Source of the DNA: Trichosphaerium sp. ATCC 40318
Taxonomy: Eukaryota; Protista; Tubulinea
Assembly (NCBI GenBank): GCA_038496445.1
Contig: JALMLS010000514.1
Span: forward strand, 198,982 to 262,981
Length of the DNA stretch: 64,000 nt
Direction: 5' to 3'
The notes below the pieces were generated by a model. It saw only the letters and a program-made list of their open reading frames with translations. It was not told the origin of the DNA and ran no database searches. The first letter of the stretch is position 1. Each line of letters begins with the position of its first letter. The position numbers and the translations under genes are program-made. Below, one piece after another: positions 5,364 to 48,497 of the stretch.

Positions 5364-6849
5364 ATGATTAAAGCAGAAATAGCATCTTTTAGTGCCAAAC
5401 TTGAGCATGAGTGCAGACATATTCTCAAAGTCGCCAAAACGGAAGCAAAGCGTATTGTTAATGATGCTAAAACGGAAGCCCAGTGTATTATAGCTGACGC
5501 TAAAGACCATGCTGTTGAAATCATAGCTGAAGCTCAAATTGAGGCTGAAAACCTTCGTGATACGCTGAACGACGCTCGTATTGATATGTTAGAACAAGTA
5601 CATGGCGCTAAAAGCAAAGAATCGGAATTACAAATCTCAATCATCGATACAGCACTTAAAGACTTTGATTTCTATGGTACGTGCTCTAAAAACGTTTGAT
5701 CTTGTGCTTTATACAATAATGCTGACGTTTTACAAAGCTACAAATGCAATAACACCTCCACTTCTTCAATTACCTCCAGAACTTCAACAAAAGATTGCTG
5801 CTTACGATAAAGATGTTTTCACAAAGTATCATACCCTTTCAAGAACAGCAGCTACAGTGACTCACTATGATTCTAAATTAAGACGTCATGGCACGTGGTA
5901 CAAGTGGTACAACAAGAATGGTAAAATATGTTTCAAAGCAGTATTCAAGCAAGGTCATAAACACGGCAAAGCATGTCGATGGCACCCCAATGGACAGTTG
6001 CATCATACATGTGTATATGTTAATGGTACAAAAGATGGTCTTTATGAATCTTGGTTTCCAAATGGTGTGAAAGAGATGGAGATTGAGTTCAAGAAGGGAA
6101 AACGAAATGGGCTAGCAAAAAAAAATCACACAAACGGAACCTTGAGAACGAAACTTACCTACGCTGATGGCCTGAAGCATGGAAAAGCGACTTACTGGTA
6201 TGATAACGGAAAAAAGCAGTGCAAGGTGTTTTATAAAGATGGTAAACAAGAAGGACCTAACATTTGGTGGCACAAGAATGGTAAAACTAAAATACAAAAC
6301 TATCACAAGGAAGGCATTAAAACAGGACTACATACAGAGTGGTATGATAATGGTCAACTTAAGACAAACTGTTGTTATGTTAAAGGTAGACAAGAGAAGA
6401 GGTTCACTGAGTTCTATAAGAACGGACAGATTGCCATCGAGACTCACAAAACAGATGATAAAACTGATGGAGAGTACAAAAAGTGGTATAATTCTGGTCA
6501 ATTACATATTCACTGTCAATACGTCGATGATAAGAGGGAAGGTAGGTTCCAGGAATGGTATCAAAGTGGACAAATCTACCAAGAGGGTACTATGAAGGAT
6601 GATCACTTTGAAGGGTTTACAAGGTTTTGGTATCCGAATGGAAGAGTAAAGTTAGAAGCAGTACAGAAGGATAATAAGTTTGATGGTGTTAAAAGACTGT
6701 GGTATGACAATGGCCAAATAAAAGAGCACTCAAATTATAAACAGGGTGTAGTTGATGGAGAATTCAAAAAGTGGAGTGATGATGGTACATTGATAGAGCA
6801 TTATATCGCAAAAGAAGGAAAGGTAAAAAAAACCATTGTAAAAAAGTAA
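5364..6849 (+). CDS. Coiled-coil + F-box-like + MORN_2 (YwqK-like) repeat protein, copy A; intron 5677-5737
   Basis: ORFs 5364-5699 and 5602-6849 join in frame through a GTACGT...GCTGAC...AAG intron (DFY|ATNAITPP). N-terminal AxxEAxxI hendecads, then LLQLPPELQQKI, then about 13 repeats of about 24 aa (WYxNGQ...YxxGxxxG). Confidence 0.8.
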
Positions 6850-7020
6850 AATAAAAACTTCGCTTATTTGTTTCATGTGATCATCTGTTTCATTCACAGA
6901 TTCGGTAAGGATTCACTATCCCTTGAACGAAAAAGCGCATCTTTGAATATCAGAAAACAGCTTTTGGCAGACAGCTGTTCCTGCCATAAGTAAATAAAAC
7001 AAAAATACAACGCTCCTCGT

Positions 7021-8301
7021 ATGTTCAAAGCAGAAATAGCGTCCTTGAGTGCCAAACTTGAGTATGAGTGCAGACATATTCTCAAAGTCGCCAAAACGGA
7101 AGCTCAGTGCATTATTGATGACGCTAAAGACCGTGCTATTGAAATCATAGCTGAAGCGCAAGTTGAAGCTGAAAACCTTCGTGATACGCTGAAAGGCGCT
7201 CGTATTGATATGTTAGAGCAATTACATGGCGCTAAAAGCGAAGAATCGGAATTACAAATCTCAATCATCGATACAGCACTTAAAGACTTTGATTTCTATG
7301 GTATGTGCGCTTAAAAACGTTTGATCTTGTGCTTTATACAATAATGCTGACGCTTTACAAAAGCTACAAATGCAATAACACCTCCACTTCTTCAATTACC
7401 TCCAGAACTTCAACAAAAGATTGCTGCTTACGATAAAGATGTTTTCACAAAGTATCATACCCTTTCAAGAACAGCAGCTACAATGACTCACTATGATTCT
7501 AAATTAAGACGTCATGGCACGTGGTACAAGTGGTACAACAAGAACGGTAAAATATGCATCAAACAACACCTCAATAGTGGTATTAAACACGGCAAATCAT
7601 CTCAATGGTACTCTGATGGACAGTTGCATCATACATGTGTATTTGTTAATGGTGTAAAGGATGGCCGCTATGAATCTTGGTTTCCGAGTGGTGTGAAAGA
7701 GATGGAGATTGAGTTCAAAAAGGGAAAACGAACTGGGTTAACAGAGTGGCATAAAAATGGTAAGATGAGACAACAAAGTGAGTATAAAGATGGTAAGAAG
7801 GCTGGGTTACATACAAGGTGGTTTAATAATGGACAAATAAATATAAACTGTAGCTTTTATAATGGTAAGAAAAAGGATCGTTTCAGAGAGTACTATAAGA
7901 ACGGACAGGTTGCAATTGAGACTTGTAAAAAAGATGATAAAACAGATGGAGAGTACAAAAAGTGGTATAATTCTGGTCAATTACATATTCACTGCCATTA
8001 CATCAATAATAAGCGAGAAGGTCCTTTCAAACAATGGTATCAAAGTGGACAAATCTACCAAGAGGGTACTATGAAGGAGGATCACTTTGAAGGGTTTACA
8101 AGGTTTTGGTATCCGAATGGAAGAGTTAAAAAAGAAGTAGTGCAACATGATAACAAGTTAGATGGTGTTAAAAGACTGTGGTATGACAATGGCCAAATAA
8201 AAGAGCACTCAAATTATAAACAGGGTGTAGTTGATGGAGAATTCAAAAAGTGGAGTGATGATGGTACATTGATAGAGCATTATATTGCAAAGGAACAGTA
8301 A
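7021..8301 (+). CDS. Coiled-coil + F-box-like + MORN_2 repeat protein, tandem copy B; intron 7301-7363
   Basis: Near-identical to copy A at both ends with the same intron position. It has one fewer hendecad, about 2 fewer MORN repeats and a shortened C-terminus. Confidence 0.8.
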
Positions 8302-30575: not shown

Positions 30576-31193
30576 ACAGGTGTCTCTATACAATATTCAT
30601 TATAAACAAAAATGATACTAAACAAACAGCCTATGTTTATTAAACGCTTGGACTGACCATCTAAATATTGTTACCAAAAAATCACGTGACATGTGATAAT
30701 GTTAGAATTCCGCTAGGAAAAAGATTGTAGGGATGACCATGAAGTGAGAAATATCTTGACAATGAAGTATTTATCACGATGTCACTAGATTAGCATTTTC
30801 CAACTTTATCGGAAATTTGTACAAGTAGGGACTCACGTTATCGATAATGTGAACTGCGATGTTGCTTTTTTGTACCGCGGAACTTCTGTCTGACGTCACT
30901 AATAGACAACTTTGCTTGCGTACTTTGCTGCACTATTAGGCTGTTGTTTTGGTGCCGTGCAGTTGCTTTCGTCCGTATACTATTTCGGGTTTACGCTATT
31001 TTGGTAGTTCCGGGCAATGTCTCTACGCTAGCAATGCTTCGGTACTTACTGGATGGAATGGTGTTTGTTTATACACTAGCGCAACTGTACTCTTCCTAAA
31101 ATAGTATTATCTTTGGCCAAATCTAGAATGAGACCAAAACTAAAAACTCACAACACAAACCACAACAACTCACTAAAAAACACGTACACAAAA

Positions 31194-33325
31194 ATGCAAT
31201 ACACTCACCTACTCGCACTAGTATGCGTAGTAGCACTTTACATTAGCTTTGCTTCTGCTCACAGTTTCATGTGTGTACCACGTCCTTTCACTGGCTTTGA
31301 CGGTGGTTGCCGACACGACAGAAATGGTAACAACCTTATTTGCCCTGGACCTTGTGAAGATTGGACCCAAGGTCGCGGAGGACCACAACAGAGGTTCACA
31401 AAAGCAAACGTACCTTTCGGTGCAACATACAGGCGTGGACAGAGAGTTACATTCGAATGGGCGTACGTAGATTGCGCTTTTGTAAAGCCTGTTTGGAAAG
31501 TTTCCTTTATCGCGCTACTAACGCTAGTTTAGTAAAAACAACCATAAAGCCGGTTTTACACGTTTAGCTATCTCACCATGGAAACATCAATACAACAAGC
31601 CAGAATTCGAGAAATTCGCTTTCGCTTACGTCTGCTGGTAAACAATAATCCCCAAGCATATTTCTAAGTACATGTAGGGACGGTCAAGCACAACCAAGTT
31701 ACCGCAATGACCCTCGCGGCAAGAAACAATGCGGTGACAGTGGAGATGGCAAATACATCACGTACACTACAACAATCCCGGATTGCGTACCAGATGGTGA
31801 ATACATTCTCGGTTGGGCTTGGTTCGGTGGCGCTAACTTGGGTGATTACTACTCTTGCTCCAAGATCGTTATTTCAGGTGGTAACACTTTAAAGGCCAGC
31901 TGTCCTGTATTGTGTAAGGAATGTGATTCTACAACTCATGAACTCGGTGTTTGTGCCAAAGAGGGTTGCAGCAGACACTCACGCAACTTCTTTGGAAATA
32001 ACAAAAAGACACCCAATAGTTGTAATTCCAACACCCGTCTACTCAGCGAACAATATGGCGCTACTGGTTCTACAGGCGGTAACAGCAATGGTGGTAACAA
32101 CAACGGCGGTAATAACAACGGAAACAACAACGGTGGAAGCAACAATGGCGGAAACAACGGCGGAAACAACAACTCCGGAAACAACAATGGTGGAAACAAC
32201 GGTGGAAACAACAATGGCGGTAACAATGGCGGCAATAATGGCGGTAATGGAAACATTCCTACATTAAAAGCCCCAGGTGTTGTTGGAGTACAATACTTCA
32301 GCTCCTTTGAAGATAGAAGCCAAGGAAATGCAGGTACACTTTACTATATTTTAGTCTTTTTTTCTTCATTTTGACTTTCACTTTGTTTTTTACTTACTTC
32401 TACGAATACAGGCGGTGATACATGTGCTCCAAAGAATGGAGGTTCCAAAATGGCTGATTTGCAATCAAACAACGGTGTATGTAACCTTGGATGGATCCAA
32501 GAAGGCGAATGGGTCATGTATGATATTGACTTTCAAGCTGGTTCGTACAATGTTGAATTTGAAGTTGCATCTGCAAGAGCTGGTACACATGCCTTCGAAA
32601 CAAGAGTAGAAGGTGGCGGGACAACTCAATTCTCATTCGGAGCAACTGGAGGTACATAGCCTTTGTTTTTCTTTTGTTTTTAACTTGGCTTATTTAAACT
32701 TGTCGTATTTGGTTCTTACGATTGATACATAGGTTGGCAAAGTTACACAACTATCAGAGAGTTCATTGGATCTGTTGGAGGTGGGCGTAAAGAATTCACA
32801 ATTGAAATGAAGTCAGATGATTTCAACATTCGCAGTTTCAGGTTCATCAAAACTGAAAGCAATGGTGGTAACAACGGCGGCAACAACAATGGCGGCAACA
32901 ACCGTGGAAACAATGGCGGTAACAACAGGGATAACAACAGAAACAACAACAACTGTCCAGGCAAACGTGATCTGTAAGTTTTTTTTTATTGAACTCTTTT
33001 GTTTGTTTTTTTTTTGCTTATTTTATGCCCTAGTGAATCACAAAGCAAGGCTTTGATTCTCAAAGAACCAACAGAAATGATCAGAGGTTCTAAATACGTT
33101 ATGCCTGTCCGATACTTTGCTGCTGAAGATAGCGTTGTTCAAGTCTTAATGTGGAACAACATGAAGCCAATCTCAACTGGTTATGCTCTTGTTGAAGCAG
33201 GCGAGAATGTTACAAATGTAACAGTATCTGTGCCTACACACGCTCAAAGTGGTAACTACTTCTTGACAACACATGTACAAGCTCAATCTGATGTCACTCA
33301 GAGCAGCTTTGTCAAAGTAAACTAA
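31194..33325 (+). CDS. Secreted LPMO-like (His-brace) protein + Asn/Gly linker + CBM6-like module + C-terminal beta-sandwich domain
   Basis: A 22-aa signal peptide ending ASA leaves His at mature position 1 (31260). Second His in KNNHKAGFTRL, then TIPDCVPDGEYILGWAWFGG and DYYSCSKIVI. CBM6-like NLGWIQEGEWVMYDIDF...VASA...TGGWQSY. Confidence 0.75.
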
Positions 33326-47108: not shown

Positions 47109-48497
47109 TTAATTTATGCTTGCCAAAATATGTACTTTCCATGCCCTTGGAGCACCATGTGGTACAAATGGATAGGGTGACATATCAACAAATACAGTAC
47201 TTTTTCTAAACAATGGTTCAAACTTAATTGGCTGTAGGGTTTCTTTGCGGCCAAAAAGTGGAAATTGGTTTATCTTATTTGTTGATCTTAGTAAAATCAT
47301 CCCACAAGATAGCTCTGATACTGCAATTGTTATATAATCTGTTGTGAACCTTCTCCACCCATACAAGCCATTTTGAGAATATACTCCAAACTCTCTACAT
47401 AGCTCAGCAAAGTATACGCATTTAGAACATATCTCTATGTACTTCAATCCATTTTCCATTTCGATTATTCTATAATTAGAAACAGCTCCAAAAACACTCT
47501 TTTTTTGGAAGAACATTGTTATAAAGCAACTGCTTAATCCTTTTTTTGGTCCTCTTTGGGTGAACGTATATATCATATTCCTGTGGTATACTTTATCATT
47601 ATTAATACTACATTCATGATTTTCCATGTGATCAATAAGCATGAGATTCAGTATCTTTTGTTTTCCAAGTTTTTTCTGAAAACTGGCAACAACACTCTTT
47701 CTAGACATCAAACTCTTGTCATCTTCACATACAACGTTCATAATATCTATACAACGTTTCTGAAACCTTTCATTGTACCAGTCATTAGCAGCAAGCGTAA
47801 AAAAGTCCAAATAGTTCTTTTTTATGAAACGCTTAGCATCTTCTTTTTGTTCTGATGCTAAACATCGATCCATGTAATCAAAAGCGTTCACTACGTACAC
47901 CAAACGCACAGCATGTATGATACAACGACATAGAAAGTGCAAATAGCTATCAAGAGGTTGACAAACGCTTCCAACAGCAAAGAAGCGCTTGGTGCCCACG
48001 TTTATTCCTTCTACTGCCAGATAGTTTTGAAAATACTTCTTAAGGTGATCAGACGTTATATTACGCCAAGAATAGCTTACCAACCGCAATTTAAGCAACT
48101 GGCGTTGATAAAGCACTTTTTTGTGTTTTTTCGTTATTCTAAACGTCTGACGAAGCAGTAAACTCAGAATATGGTAAGTTATCTCGTTGGGCAGCGTCCA
48201 TTGAAACGTTGGGTCAGTTTTGATCATGTTGGCGCTTTTTTTAGCCTCAACGCACTTGGAGCGTGTTTCAATGCCGTCCGTCGCGTCAGCGATGTCATCT
48301 GTTTGTTTTAGAATTATCTCATCTAATTGTTGTACCAAACGTTCATTTGAGAGGTTTATAGTATGTTTTAGTTGTTTTAAGAGTTGTGTATGCGTTTCCG
48401 CTGTGAGCTTGCTAAATGCTACAGTGTGCTGCTCGCGATAGTATTGTAGCGCTTGTTCAACTGAAACTCCAAAGAAATTCATTAATTGTTGACACAA
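47109..48497 (-). CDS. Intronless F-box protein with unknown C-terminal domain
   Basis: 462-aa uninterrupted ORF containing WTLPNEITYHILS...LLKLRLVSYSWRNI. The annotated start is non-ATG, so the first in-frame ATG is a few codons downstream. Confidence 0.65.
   Translation of the reverse strand: MCQQLMNFFGVSVEQALQYYREQHTVAFSKLTAETHTQLLKQLKHTINLSNERLVQQLDEIILKQTDDIADATDGIETRSKCVEAKKSANMIKTDPTFQWTLPNEITYHILSLLLRQTFRITKKHKKVLYQRQLLKLRLVSYSWRNITSDHLKKYFQNYLAVEGINVGTKRFFAVGSVCQPLDSYLHFLCRCIIHAVRLVYVVNAFDYMDRCLASEQKEDAKRFIKKNYLDFFTLAANDWYNERFQKRCIDIMNVVCEDDKSLMSRKSVVASFQKKLGKQKILNLMLIDHMENHECSINNDKVYHRNMIYTFTQRGPKKGLSSCFITMFFQKKSVFGAVSNYRIIEMENGLKYIEICSKCVYFAELCREFGVYSQNGLYGWRRFTTDYITIAVSELSCGMILLRSTNKINQFPLFGRKETLQPIKFEPLFRKSTVFVDMSPYPFVPHGAPRAWKVHILASIN

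Follow-up and report, generated by a model that had tools for sequence, protein, structure and literature searches.

Does an amoeba-like protist encode a secreted lytic polysaccharide monooxygenase (LPMO) that falls outside the families of these enzymes recognised so far? The question is raised by a six-exon gene on the + strand at positions 31194-33325 (ATG at 31194, stop codon ending at 33325) of a 64,000-nucleotide stretch of Trichosphaerium sp. ATCC 40318 contig JALMLS010000514.1, hereafter the window. LPMOs are central to the degradation of chitin, cellulose and other recalcitrant polysaccharides. A first inspection of the DNA letters, hereafter the original prediction, had proposed an unclassified, secreted LPMO fused to a family 6 carbohydrate-binding module (CBM6) at this locus. 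The features it described were confirmed, and its central interpretation is supported: based on the analysis described below, we consider it reasonably probable that the product of this gene is a secreted, modular copper LPMO, tethered to a CBM6 and belonging to an unclassified family related to family AA11. Coordinates of the predicted features are collected in Table 1.

The predicted signal peptide, MQYTHLLALVCVVALYISFASA followed by HSFM, displays a mean Kyte-Doolittle value of 2.8 across residues 6-18, and this strongly hydrophobic core, together with Ala at positions -3 and -1, indicates that the mature protein, once cleaved, would begin with His (residue 1). The same layout recurs in the family described below, where a His stands at the domain start, behind a signal-peptide-like stretch, in all homologues whose sequence extends that far; a simple rule found a signal peptide ending directly before the His in 69/150 among the matches listed. 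The other two residues of the proposed copper site lie in the motifs NNH-K-A-G-F-T-R (His94 of the precursor) and GWAWFGG...GDYYSC (Tyr182), and the catalytic domain and its Cys-rich tail together contain 14 Cys. Cleavage after ASA to expose His1, as the original prediction had it, therefore agrees with the hydrophobic core, with the Ala residues and with the layout of the family as a whole.

We asked which family the catalytic domain belongs to. Database and folding searches took single exons as queries, and the joined 600-residue sequence served for reading frame, numbering, composition and a tblastn search within the window. None of the Pfam or NCBIfam models covered the N-terminal domain in single-exon queries, NCBIfam returning 0 matches. 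An exhaustive HMMER search with the first 110 residues of exon 3 against 1.84 billion cluster representatives identified 161 representatives at a cut-off of E<=1e-3, 11 of them at E<=1e-10 (best 2.3e-15), with 42-57% identity over the matched part. Since a near-identical match was absent from the 161, the window protein is apparently missing from that library. The relatives bear no functional names: where named at all, each is labelled 'hypothetical protein' and belongs to a red alga, Pyropia vietnamensis or P. yezoensis, and the remainder come from metagenome and Sequence Read Archive assemblies. One relative lies on a eukaryotic contig, adjoining genes for TAF6 and pyruvate kinase. Other searches were less productive. 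A word-based protein search with exon 3 gave 0 matches, probably owing to the length window of that search; with P0004, the closest full-length homologue, it gave 32 unnamed relatives, the window protein not among them, and with the full-length alignment A3 it returned P0004 only, being swamped by uninformative words. A feature search of the ESM Atlas with exon 3 produced sub-threshold leads only (0.88), to haptophyte 'chitin-binding type-4' fragments. Pattern scans, which see close relatives only, found no relative in IMG/VR viral contigs; when bacterial and archaeal reference genomes were scanned in this way, the LPMO piece again had no close relative, distant prokaryotic kin being beyond the reach of such scans. 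In the literature searched, mostly outside subscription journals, no paper addressed the family in amoebae, in red algae or as AA18-20.

We next consider conservation within the family. A hidden Markov model (HMM A1) was built from 39 aligned full domains, and 189 retrieved relatives were then aligned to it. His1 was invariant in the 103/103 relatives that reach position 1, the His of R-N-N-H was conserved in 139/142 (98%) and the DY tyrosine in 172/181 (95%), the Asp-Tyr of G-D-Y-(Y/W/H)-S-C as a whole being kept in 95%. Around these residues, the last four fixed positions of G-G-F-x-R (G, F, R) were each conserved at 90% or more, those that are fixed in P-D-G-x-Y-x-L-x-W-x-W-x-G-G (P, D, G, Y, W, G, G) were each conserved at 89% or more, and each of eight Cys columns was occupied in at least 86% of relatives; a conserved tail, C...(R/T)xG.C..EPC, follows the GG motif. 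All three brace residues, namely His1, the NNH His and the DY Tyr, are present in the window protein, whose exon pieces matched HMM A1 in order at positions 1-59 (E 5e-7), 61-94 (1e-9) and 107-200 (3e-23). Judged by sequence, such collinear matches are far beyond chance. The window protein carries nearly all of the highly conserved residues and departs from 2 conserved columns: at HMM position 19 it has Asp where the family has Gly, and at position 114 Ser where the family has Asp. Taken together, these findings place the catalytic domain in a widespread, unnamed eukaryotic family present in red algae, many environmental protists and, probably, zoopagomycete fungi.

Nine relatives appeared to have internal domains; these look mostly like over-extended gene calls containing an internal Met and a signal peptide. 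In P0015 (L004:4001-5632), P0003, P0019, P0029, P0052 and P0095, 60-120 extra N-terminal residues precede the signal-peptide-like stretch and the His. An internal Met stands just before the hydrophobic stretch in most of the over-extended calls, P0015 and P0095 being less clear.

The fold of the domain was approached from both sequence and structure. When exon 3 was compared with the sequences of solved structures, only AA11 LPMOs were matched (4MAH, 9EXJ and 7P3U, E 2e-4 to 2.5e-3). The alignment follows the strand pair ...PDGEYILGWAWFGG-ANLGDYYSCSKIVISGG and in it the first Tyr of DYY coincides with AoAA11 Tyr140, and Cys with Cys. The family profile likewise ranked AA11 first among solved structures (9EXJ 6.3e-5, 4MAH 1.6e-4, 7P3U 2.7e-4), covering positions ~95-187 of 205, that is, the C-terminal half; AA9 came next with E 0.009-1, and AA15 (5MSZ), AA10 and AA13 were not found at E<=10. 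In the alignment with 7P3U (AfAA11A), the NNH His falls on His71 and the DY Tyr on Tyr133. H1 and H71 are the brace histidines of AfAA11A, and Y133 is its buried tyrosine (PMC8668981). The NNH His and the DYYSC Tyr singled out by the original prediction are thus present, near-invariant in the family and aligned to the brace residues of solved AA11 enzymes.

For structural comparison we used an AlphaFold model of P0004 residues 13-205, built with alignment A1; this homologue is ~40% identical to the window protein. The model had a predicted local distance difference test score (pLDDT) of 82.9 and a predicted template-modelling score of 0.83, the N-terminal loop 11-40 and the Cys-rich tail being weak. 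Foldseek returned 46 matches at E<=1e-3, headed by AA11 7P3U (6.8e-7); nearly all were LPMOs or LPMO-like proteins. With VIA-align, five AA11 entries scored Z 12.0-12.8 (root-mean-square deviation ~3 A over 146-154 residues, residue 1 on residue 1), followed by AA15 (11.3), AA13 (11.1), AA10 (10-11), AA9 (~10) and X325 (9.7), and 50/50 among the matches listed were LPMOs or LPMO-like copper proteins. A structural search of the ESM Atlas gave as best neighbour an un-annotated Zoopagomycota cluster, with a template-modelling (TM) score of 0.74 over 173 residues. Ascomycete clusters without a Pfam family, which are likely to be AA11, followed it, and a BIM1-like cluster was also present (TM 0.54). 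As far as the homologue's model can tell, the domain has both the fold and the brace residues of an LPMO. Its closest counterpart among known families is AA11, at a distance about equal to that between recognised families. The original prediction had expected just such a domain, one that lacks a strong match to any characterised AA family, and the best match is indeed a partial one, to AA11 at E 6e-5; that AA11 is the nearest known family had gone unnoticed. The resemblance that it proposed to proteins of red algae and basal fungi was confirmed by the Pyropia relatives and the Zoopagomycota cluster.

We weighed the possibility that the window protein is an LPMO-like copper protein that does not cleave polysaccharides, serving, as X325/Bim1 proteins do, in copper capture or homeostasis or in wall-associated redox chemistry, or else as a carbohydrate-binding or adhesive protein with the LPMO fold. 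X325 proteins have Asp as a further copper ligand, are anchored by glycosylphosphatidylinositol (GPI) and are not known to carry carbohydrate-binding modules. Their LPMO-like fold with an N-terminal His brace (LaX325, 6IBH/6IBI, Z 9.5-9.7) is common to both, and the LaX325 match, the BIM1-like Atlas cluster and the occurrence of Gly at the position of the AA11/AA9 second-sphere Glu/Gln all lend this explanation some weight. In contrast to X325, the family under study keeps the Tyr in 95% of relatives, as in the catalytic AA9, AA11 and AA13 enzymes, and the precursor of the window protein ends in ...SSFVKVN, which by inspection is non-hydrophobic and hence lacks the hydrophobic end able to signal a GPI anchor. 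AA11, AA15, AA13 and AA10 all outscored X325 in VIA-align. Accessory modules tell the same way. In a Pfam scan of 97 full-length relatives, AA9 was matched weakly in 5 (best 2.8e-7), hevein-type chitin-binding/CBM18 in 3, ricin-type lectin in 2 and CBM2 in 1, and LPMO_10 and Reeler in 0; that carbohydrate-binding modules (CBM6, ricin, CBM18, CBM2) have been joined to family members repeatedly argues for action on polysaccharides rather than for a copper carrier. On balance, we regard a non-cleaving copper protein as unlikely.

The similarity to AA11 invites a second alternative, which is that the domain is a divergent, chitin-active member of CAZy family AA11 itself and needs no separate family, in which case CAZy/dbCAN models would already place the window domain there. 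AA11 is the best match by sequence, by profile (E 6e-5 to 3e-4), in Foldseek and in VIA-align (Z 12-12.8). AA11 enzymes (AoAA11 4MAH/4MAI, AfAA11A 7P3U, AfAA11B 9EXJ/9HDG) are likewise secreted, their His1 immediately following the signal peptide; they have the second His and the buried Tyr at aligned positions, share the W-x-W...Y-x-x-C strand followed by (I/V)-x-G-G, and are modular, with linkers and extra domains. The strand and the brace residues align gap-free, and chitin-binding CBM18 occurs in some relatives. The profile similarity is weak, however, extending over ~90/205 positions, and the lead of AA11 over AA15, AA13 and AA10 amounts to just 1-2 Z units. The second-His motif of AA11, T-H-G-G-G-S-C-Q, differs from NNH-x-G-F-x-R in this family; the Glu that AA11 has two residues before the Tyr is replaced by Gly, with a conserved Asp adjoining the Tyr; the N-terminal HS...CR.GG...CPGPC segment has no significant alignment to AA11; and the conserved Cys-rich ...LG.C..EPC tail sets the family apart. 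Unlike AA11, the window protein has CBM6 as its appended module. The hosts are protists and red algae, as opposed to Dikarya for AA11, which has been described as fungal (PMC8668981; PMC6690862). We accordingly find simple membership in AA11 distinctly unlikely and retain an AA11-related, unclassified family as the reading of this domain.

Similar comparisons were made with two further families. AA15 proteins are recognised by Pfam LPMO_10, in contrast to 0/97 relatives of the present family, and the window exons did not match that model (PF03067). AA15 (TdAA15A, 5MSZ) shares with this family the His1 LPMO fold and a eukaryotic, non-fungal spread that includes Rhodophyta and Haptophyta, and its Z of 11.3 was second best. 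Membership in AA15, considered since the family is known from red algae and haptophytes, was rejected for want of an LPMO_10 signal; AA15 has already been reported from red algae, haptophytes, oomycetes and other protists (PMC5823890). AA9 shares the conserved ...Y-x-x-C strand (Z ~10), and 5/97 relatives reach the Pfam AA9 model (PF03443), which the window exons did not match at E<=1. It differs in that its Q-x-Y second-sphere motif is missing from this family, and AA9 was weaker than AA11 in every comparison.

The integrity of the gene itself bears on these conclusions. Several open-frame pieces span 31194-33325 (+), parted by short stop-containing stretches, which we modelled as introns 1-5 of 70, 40, 78, 81 and 60 nt, with GT..AG in 5/5. 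GC content was 0.23-0.33 in 4/5 introns compared with 0.40-0.48 in exons, and 0.41 in intron 1. The joined exons comprise 600 open codons, for a precursor of 600 residues, with 0 frameshifts or stops. Junction 1 rebuilds the family consensus ...TFEW-A-KNNH..., junction 2 rebuilds ...AYVC-W-DGQ... (compare ...AYSCWDSQ... in homologue P0004), and the CBM6 is made contiguous by junctions 3 and 4. Introns 1 and 2, including the 40-nt one, are supported by this regeneration of the consensus, which is the best support available. Were intron 5 retained, translation would end at a stop codon two codons inside it (...GKRDL*), and the C-terminal beta module would be lost from such an isoform. A wrong gene model or a pseudogene, with exons joined otherwise or the C-terminal module outside the protein, is highly improbable: the short intron 2, the immediate stop upon retention of intron 5 and the start left uncertain by an upstream in-frame ATG at 31128 speak for it, whereas the splice sites, the lower GC of four introns, the exact recreation of conserved residues and of a contiguous CBM6, and 600 uninterrupted codons with catalytic and structural residues all intact speak against it.

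The ATG at 31128 lies 22 codons 5' of the modelled start, and translation of 31128-31193 leads into that start as MRPKLKTHNTNHNNSLKNTYTK-MQYTH.... If used, it would give the signal peptide an unusually long, basic n-region and leave the cleavage site unmoved. This A/C-rich segment looks more like a 5' untranslated region than like coding sequence.

We turn to the modules beyond the catalytic domain. Exon 4 matched Pfam CBM_6 (PF03422) with E 3.5e-9 and 37.5 bits, against a cut-off of 28.9, over profile positions 8-72 of 125; the remainder of the CBM6 lies on exons 3 and 5, in pieces too short to score alone. By eye, we take a T-G-G-W-Q motif and a late Asn on exon 5 to be usual CBM6 elements. 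The nearest solved structures to exon 4 were bacterial CBM6s, namely 8ZVK (AaBglC), the laminarin-binding BhCBM6 1W9S, the ZgLamC CBM6 5FUI, the CtXyl5A CBM6, CmCBM6 1UXZ and one from an alpha-agarase, along with 5G56. The window motif G-W-I-x-E-G-E-W-V-M-Y aligned to these within the shared pattern G-W-I-x-x-G-(D/E)-W-x-x-Y, as did the beta strands that follow. In contrast to the solved CBM6s, that of the window resides in a eukaryotic gene, is interrupted by two spliceosomal introns and is joined to an LPMO-type domain. A pattern scan of bacterial and archaeal reference genomes, which sees close relatives only, found no close relative of the CBM6 piece; given this and the two introns, there is no sign of recent transfer. 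The 'bacterial-style' CBM6 of the original prediction is therefore bacterial with respect to its nearest solved structures but not with respect to close relatives or gene structure. The fusion itself, the Asn/Gly linkers and the dibasic KR were found as described.

The C-terminal module on exon 6 is a genuine open frame, but its fold is less distinct. A single-sequence AlphaFold2 (AF2) model gave a six-strand sandwich at low confidence (pLDDT 62), the comparison with Pfam returned only a weak NPCBM_assoc match (E 0.016), and Foldseek found no match to the model at E<=1e-3. The leads below that threshold are suggestive only and comprise internal GbpA domains, a porphyran-binding carbohydrate-binding module (8WAE) and Ig-like domains of Bacteroides glycosidases; an ESM Atlas feature search gave generic Ig-like or MG2 leads. 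A resemblance to Bacteroidetes accessory modules, proposed originally, was not borne out, nothing beyond a generic Ig-like sandwich being discernible.

Four points weigh against the proposal of a secreted, CBM6-tethered LPMO. First, the position aligned to Glu131 of AfAA11A is Gly (family fgDYysC, window N-L-G-D-Y-Y-S-C), so that the Glu of the AA11 motif R-E-x-Y-M-N-C is missing; the second sphere of the copper site accordingly differs, and it could be incompetent. Second, the LPMO fold is predicted from the model of a homologue, ~40% identical, rather than from the window's own protein. Third, the ligand of the CBM6 cannot be assigned from sequence matches. Fourth, support for the exon joining as modelled, including the 40-nt intron 2 and the intron 5 needed to attach the last module, comes only from homology.

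With these reservations, we infer copper binding, catalysis, a substrate, Kex2-type cleavage at KR and a biological role for the proposed CBM6-tethered LPMO along the following lines. Signal peptidase would cut after Ala22, and His1 would then offer its free amino group and its imidazole, forming with His72 a T-shaped copper 'histidine brace'. Tyr160 would lie beneath the metal, and the site would occupy the flat surface of an immunoglobulin-like beta-sandwich. The reduced Cu(I) site, together with O2 or H2O2, would oxidise a C-H bond next to the glycosidic linkage in an insoluble polysaccharide, on which the flexible Asn/Gly linker and the CBM6 may hold the enzyme. The C-terminal beta module might act as an accessory, spacer or binding domain. 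The substrate may be chitin and/or beta-glucan in composite walls, for example those of fungal prey or of the organism's own cyst, a suggestion drawn from the activity of AA11 on chitin and from the laminarin binders among the nearest solved CBM6s. On the more tentative reading of a separate LPMO family (see below), the pairing with CBM6, ricin, CBM18 or CBM2 suggests that the range of substrates may take in polymers other than chitin, for instance beta-1,3-glucans or algal galactans.

Table 1. Predicted features of the gene in window coordinates, with the observations on which each assignment is based
Feature	Coordinates	Strand	Basis and remarks
Signal peptide MQYTHLLALVCVVALYISFASA, 22 codons	31194..31259	+	Hydrophobic core, Ala at -3/-1; predicted cleavage after Ala22 (ASA, then H)
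His1 codon CAC (precursor His23)	31260..31262	+	Proposed N-terminal His of copper brace
LPMO-like catalytic domain, mature residues 1-171	31260..31882	+	Exons 1-3, split by introns 31463-31532 and 31638-31677; family HMM matches
Second brace His (precursor His94, mature His72), NNH motif	31543..31545	+	Conservation; alignment to AfAA11A His71
Proposed axial Tyr (precursor Tyr182, mature Tyr160), GDYYSC	31847..31849	+	Conservation; AA11 alignment
Cys-rich C-terminal extension of catalytic domain, C-x...LG-x-C-x-x-E-G-C	31883..32047	+	Family alignment; low pLDDT in homologue model
Asn/Gly linker 1, residues 249-316, 68 residues, 85% N+G	32048..32251	+	Sequence composition
CBM6, residues ~320-465	32261..32857	+	Pfam/PDB matches; split by introns 32334-32411 and 32652-32732
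Asn/Gly(/Arg) linker 2, residues 466-498, 82% N+G	32858..32956	+	Sequence composition
Dibasic Lys501-Arg502 (...CPGKRDL)	32963..32968	+	Sequence; possible proprotein-convertase site, inferred
C-terminal ~95-residue all-beta (Ig-like) module and stop codon, exon 6	33034..33325	+	Single-sequence AF2 model
Exons 1-6	31194-31462, 31533-31637, 31678-32333, 32412-32651, 32733-32973, 33034-33325	+	Model from open-frame pieces
Intron 2	31638-31677	+	40 nt, unusually short compared with 60-81 nt for the remaining introns; removal needed for ...YVCW-DGQ...
Intron 5	32974..33033	+	60 nt, GTAAGT..TAG

Elsewhere in the 64-kb window, a tblastn search with three domain pieces of the joined protein found no paralogue. 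Neighbouring open reading frames (ORFs) encode coiled-coil, F-box, MORN and leucine-rich-repeat proteins, with 0 domains of carbohydrate-active enzymes; those at 5602-8301 and 47109-48497 carry an F-box and MORN_2 repeats (Pfam MORN_2 3.6e-38; F-box-like 1.2e-5) and are unrelated to the LPMO gene. Two ORFs that overlie the Asn/Gly linker in other frames, one of 106 residues at 31936-32256 (-) and one of 114 residues at 31923-32267 (+), are artefacts of its (AAC/GGT)-rich repeat coding sequence.

The family has neither a Pfam or NCBIfam model nor a named member, yet a 110-residue query retrieved at least 161 clusters at 50% identity, and an HMM of the family would name hundreds of 'hypothetical proteins' in genome annotation. 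LPMO families were still counted as eight in a January 2026 preprint (10.1101/2025.06.05.658061). We tentatively suggest, as a possibility short of a probable conclusion, that the present family is a ninth, still unclassified one, distributed over eukaryotic supergroups (bangiophyte red algae, an amoeba-like protist, zoopagomycete fungi and many uncultured eukaryotes) and with active-site surroundings of its own, namely HS...CPGPC, RNNH-x-GGF-x-R and GDY(Y/W)SC, the last having Asp where AA11 has Glu and AA9 has Gln. A characterised representative, having no Glu/Gln at the canonical second-sphere position, would offer a new active-site variant for mechanistic work. It would also bring free-living amoebae and red algae within LPMO biology, and new substrate specificities could emerge from it.

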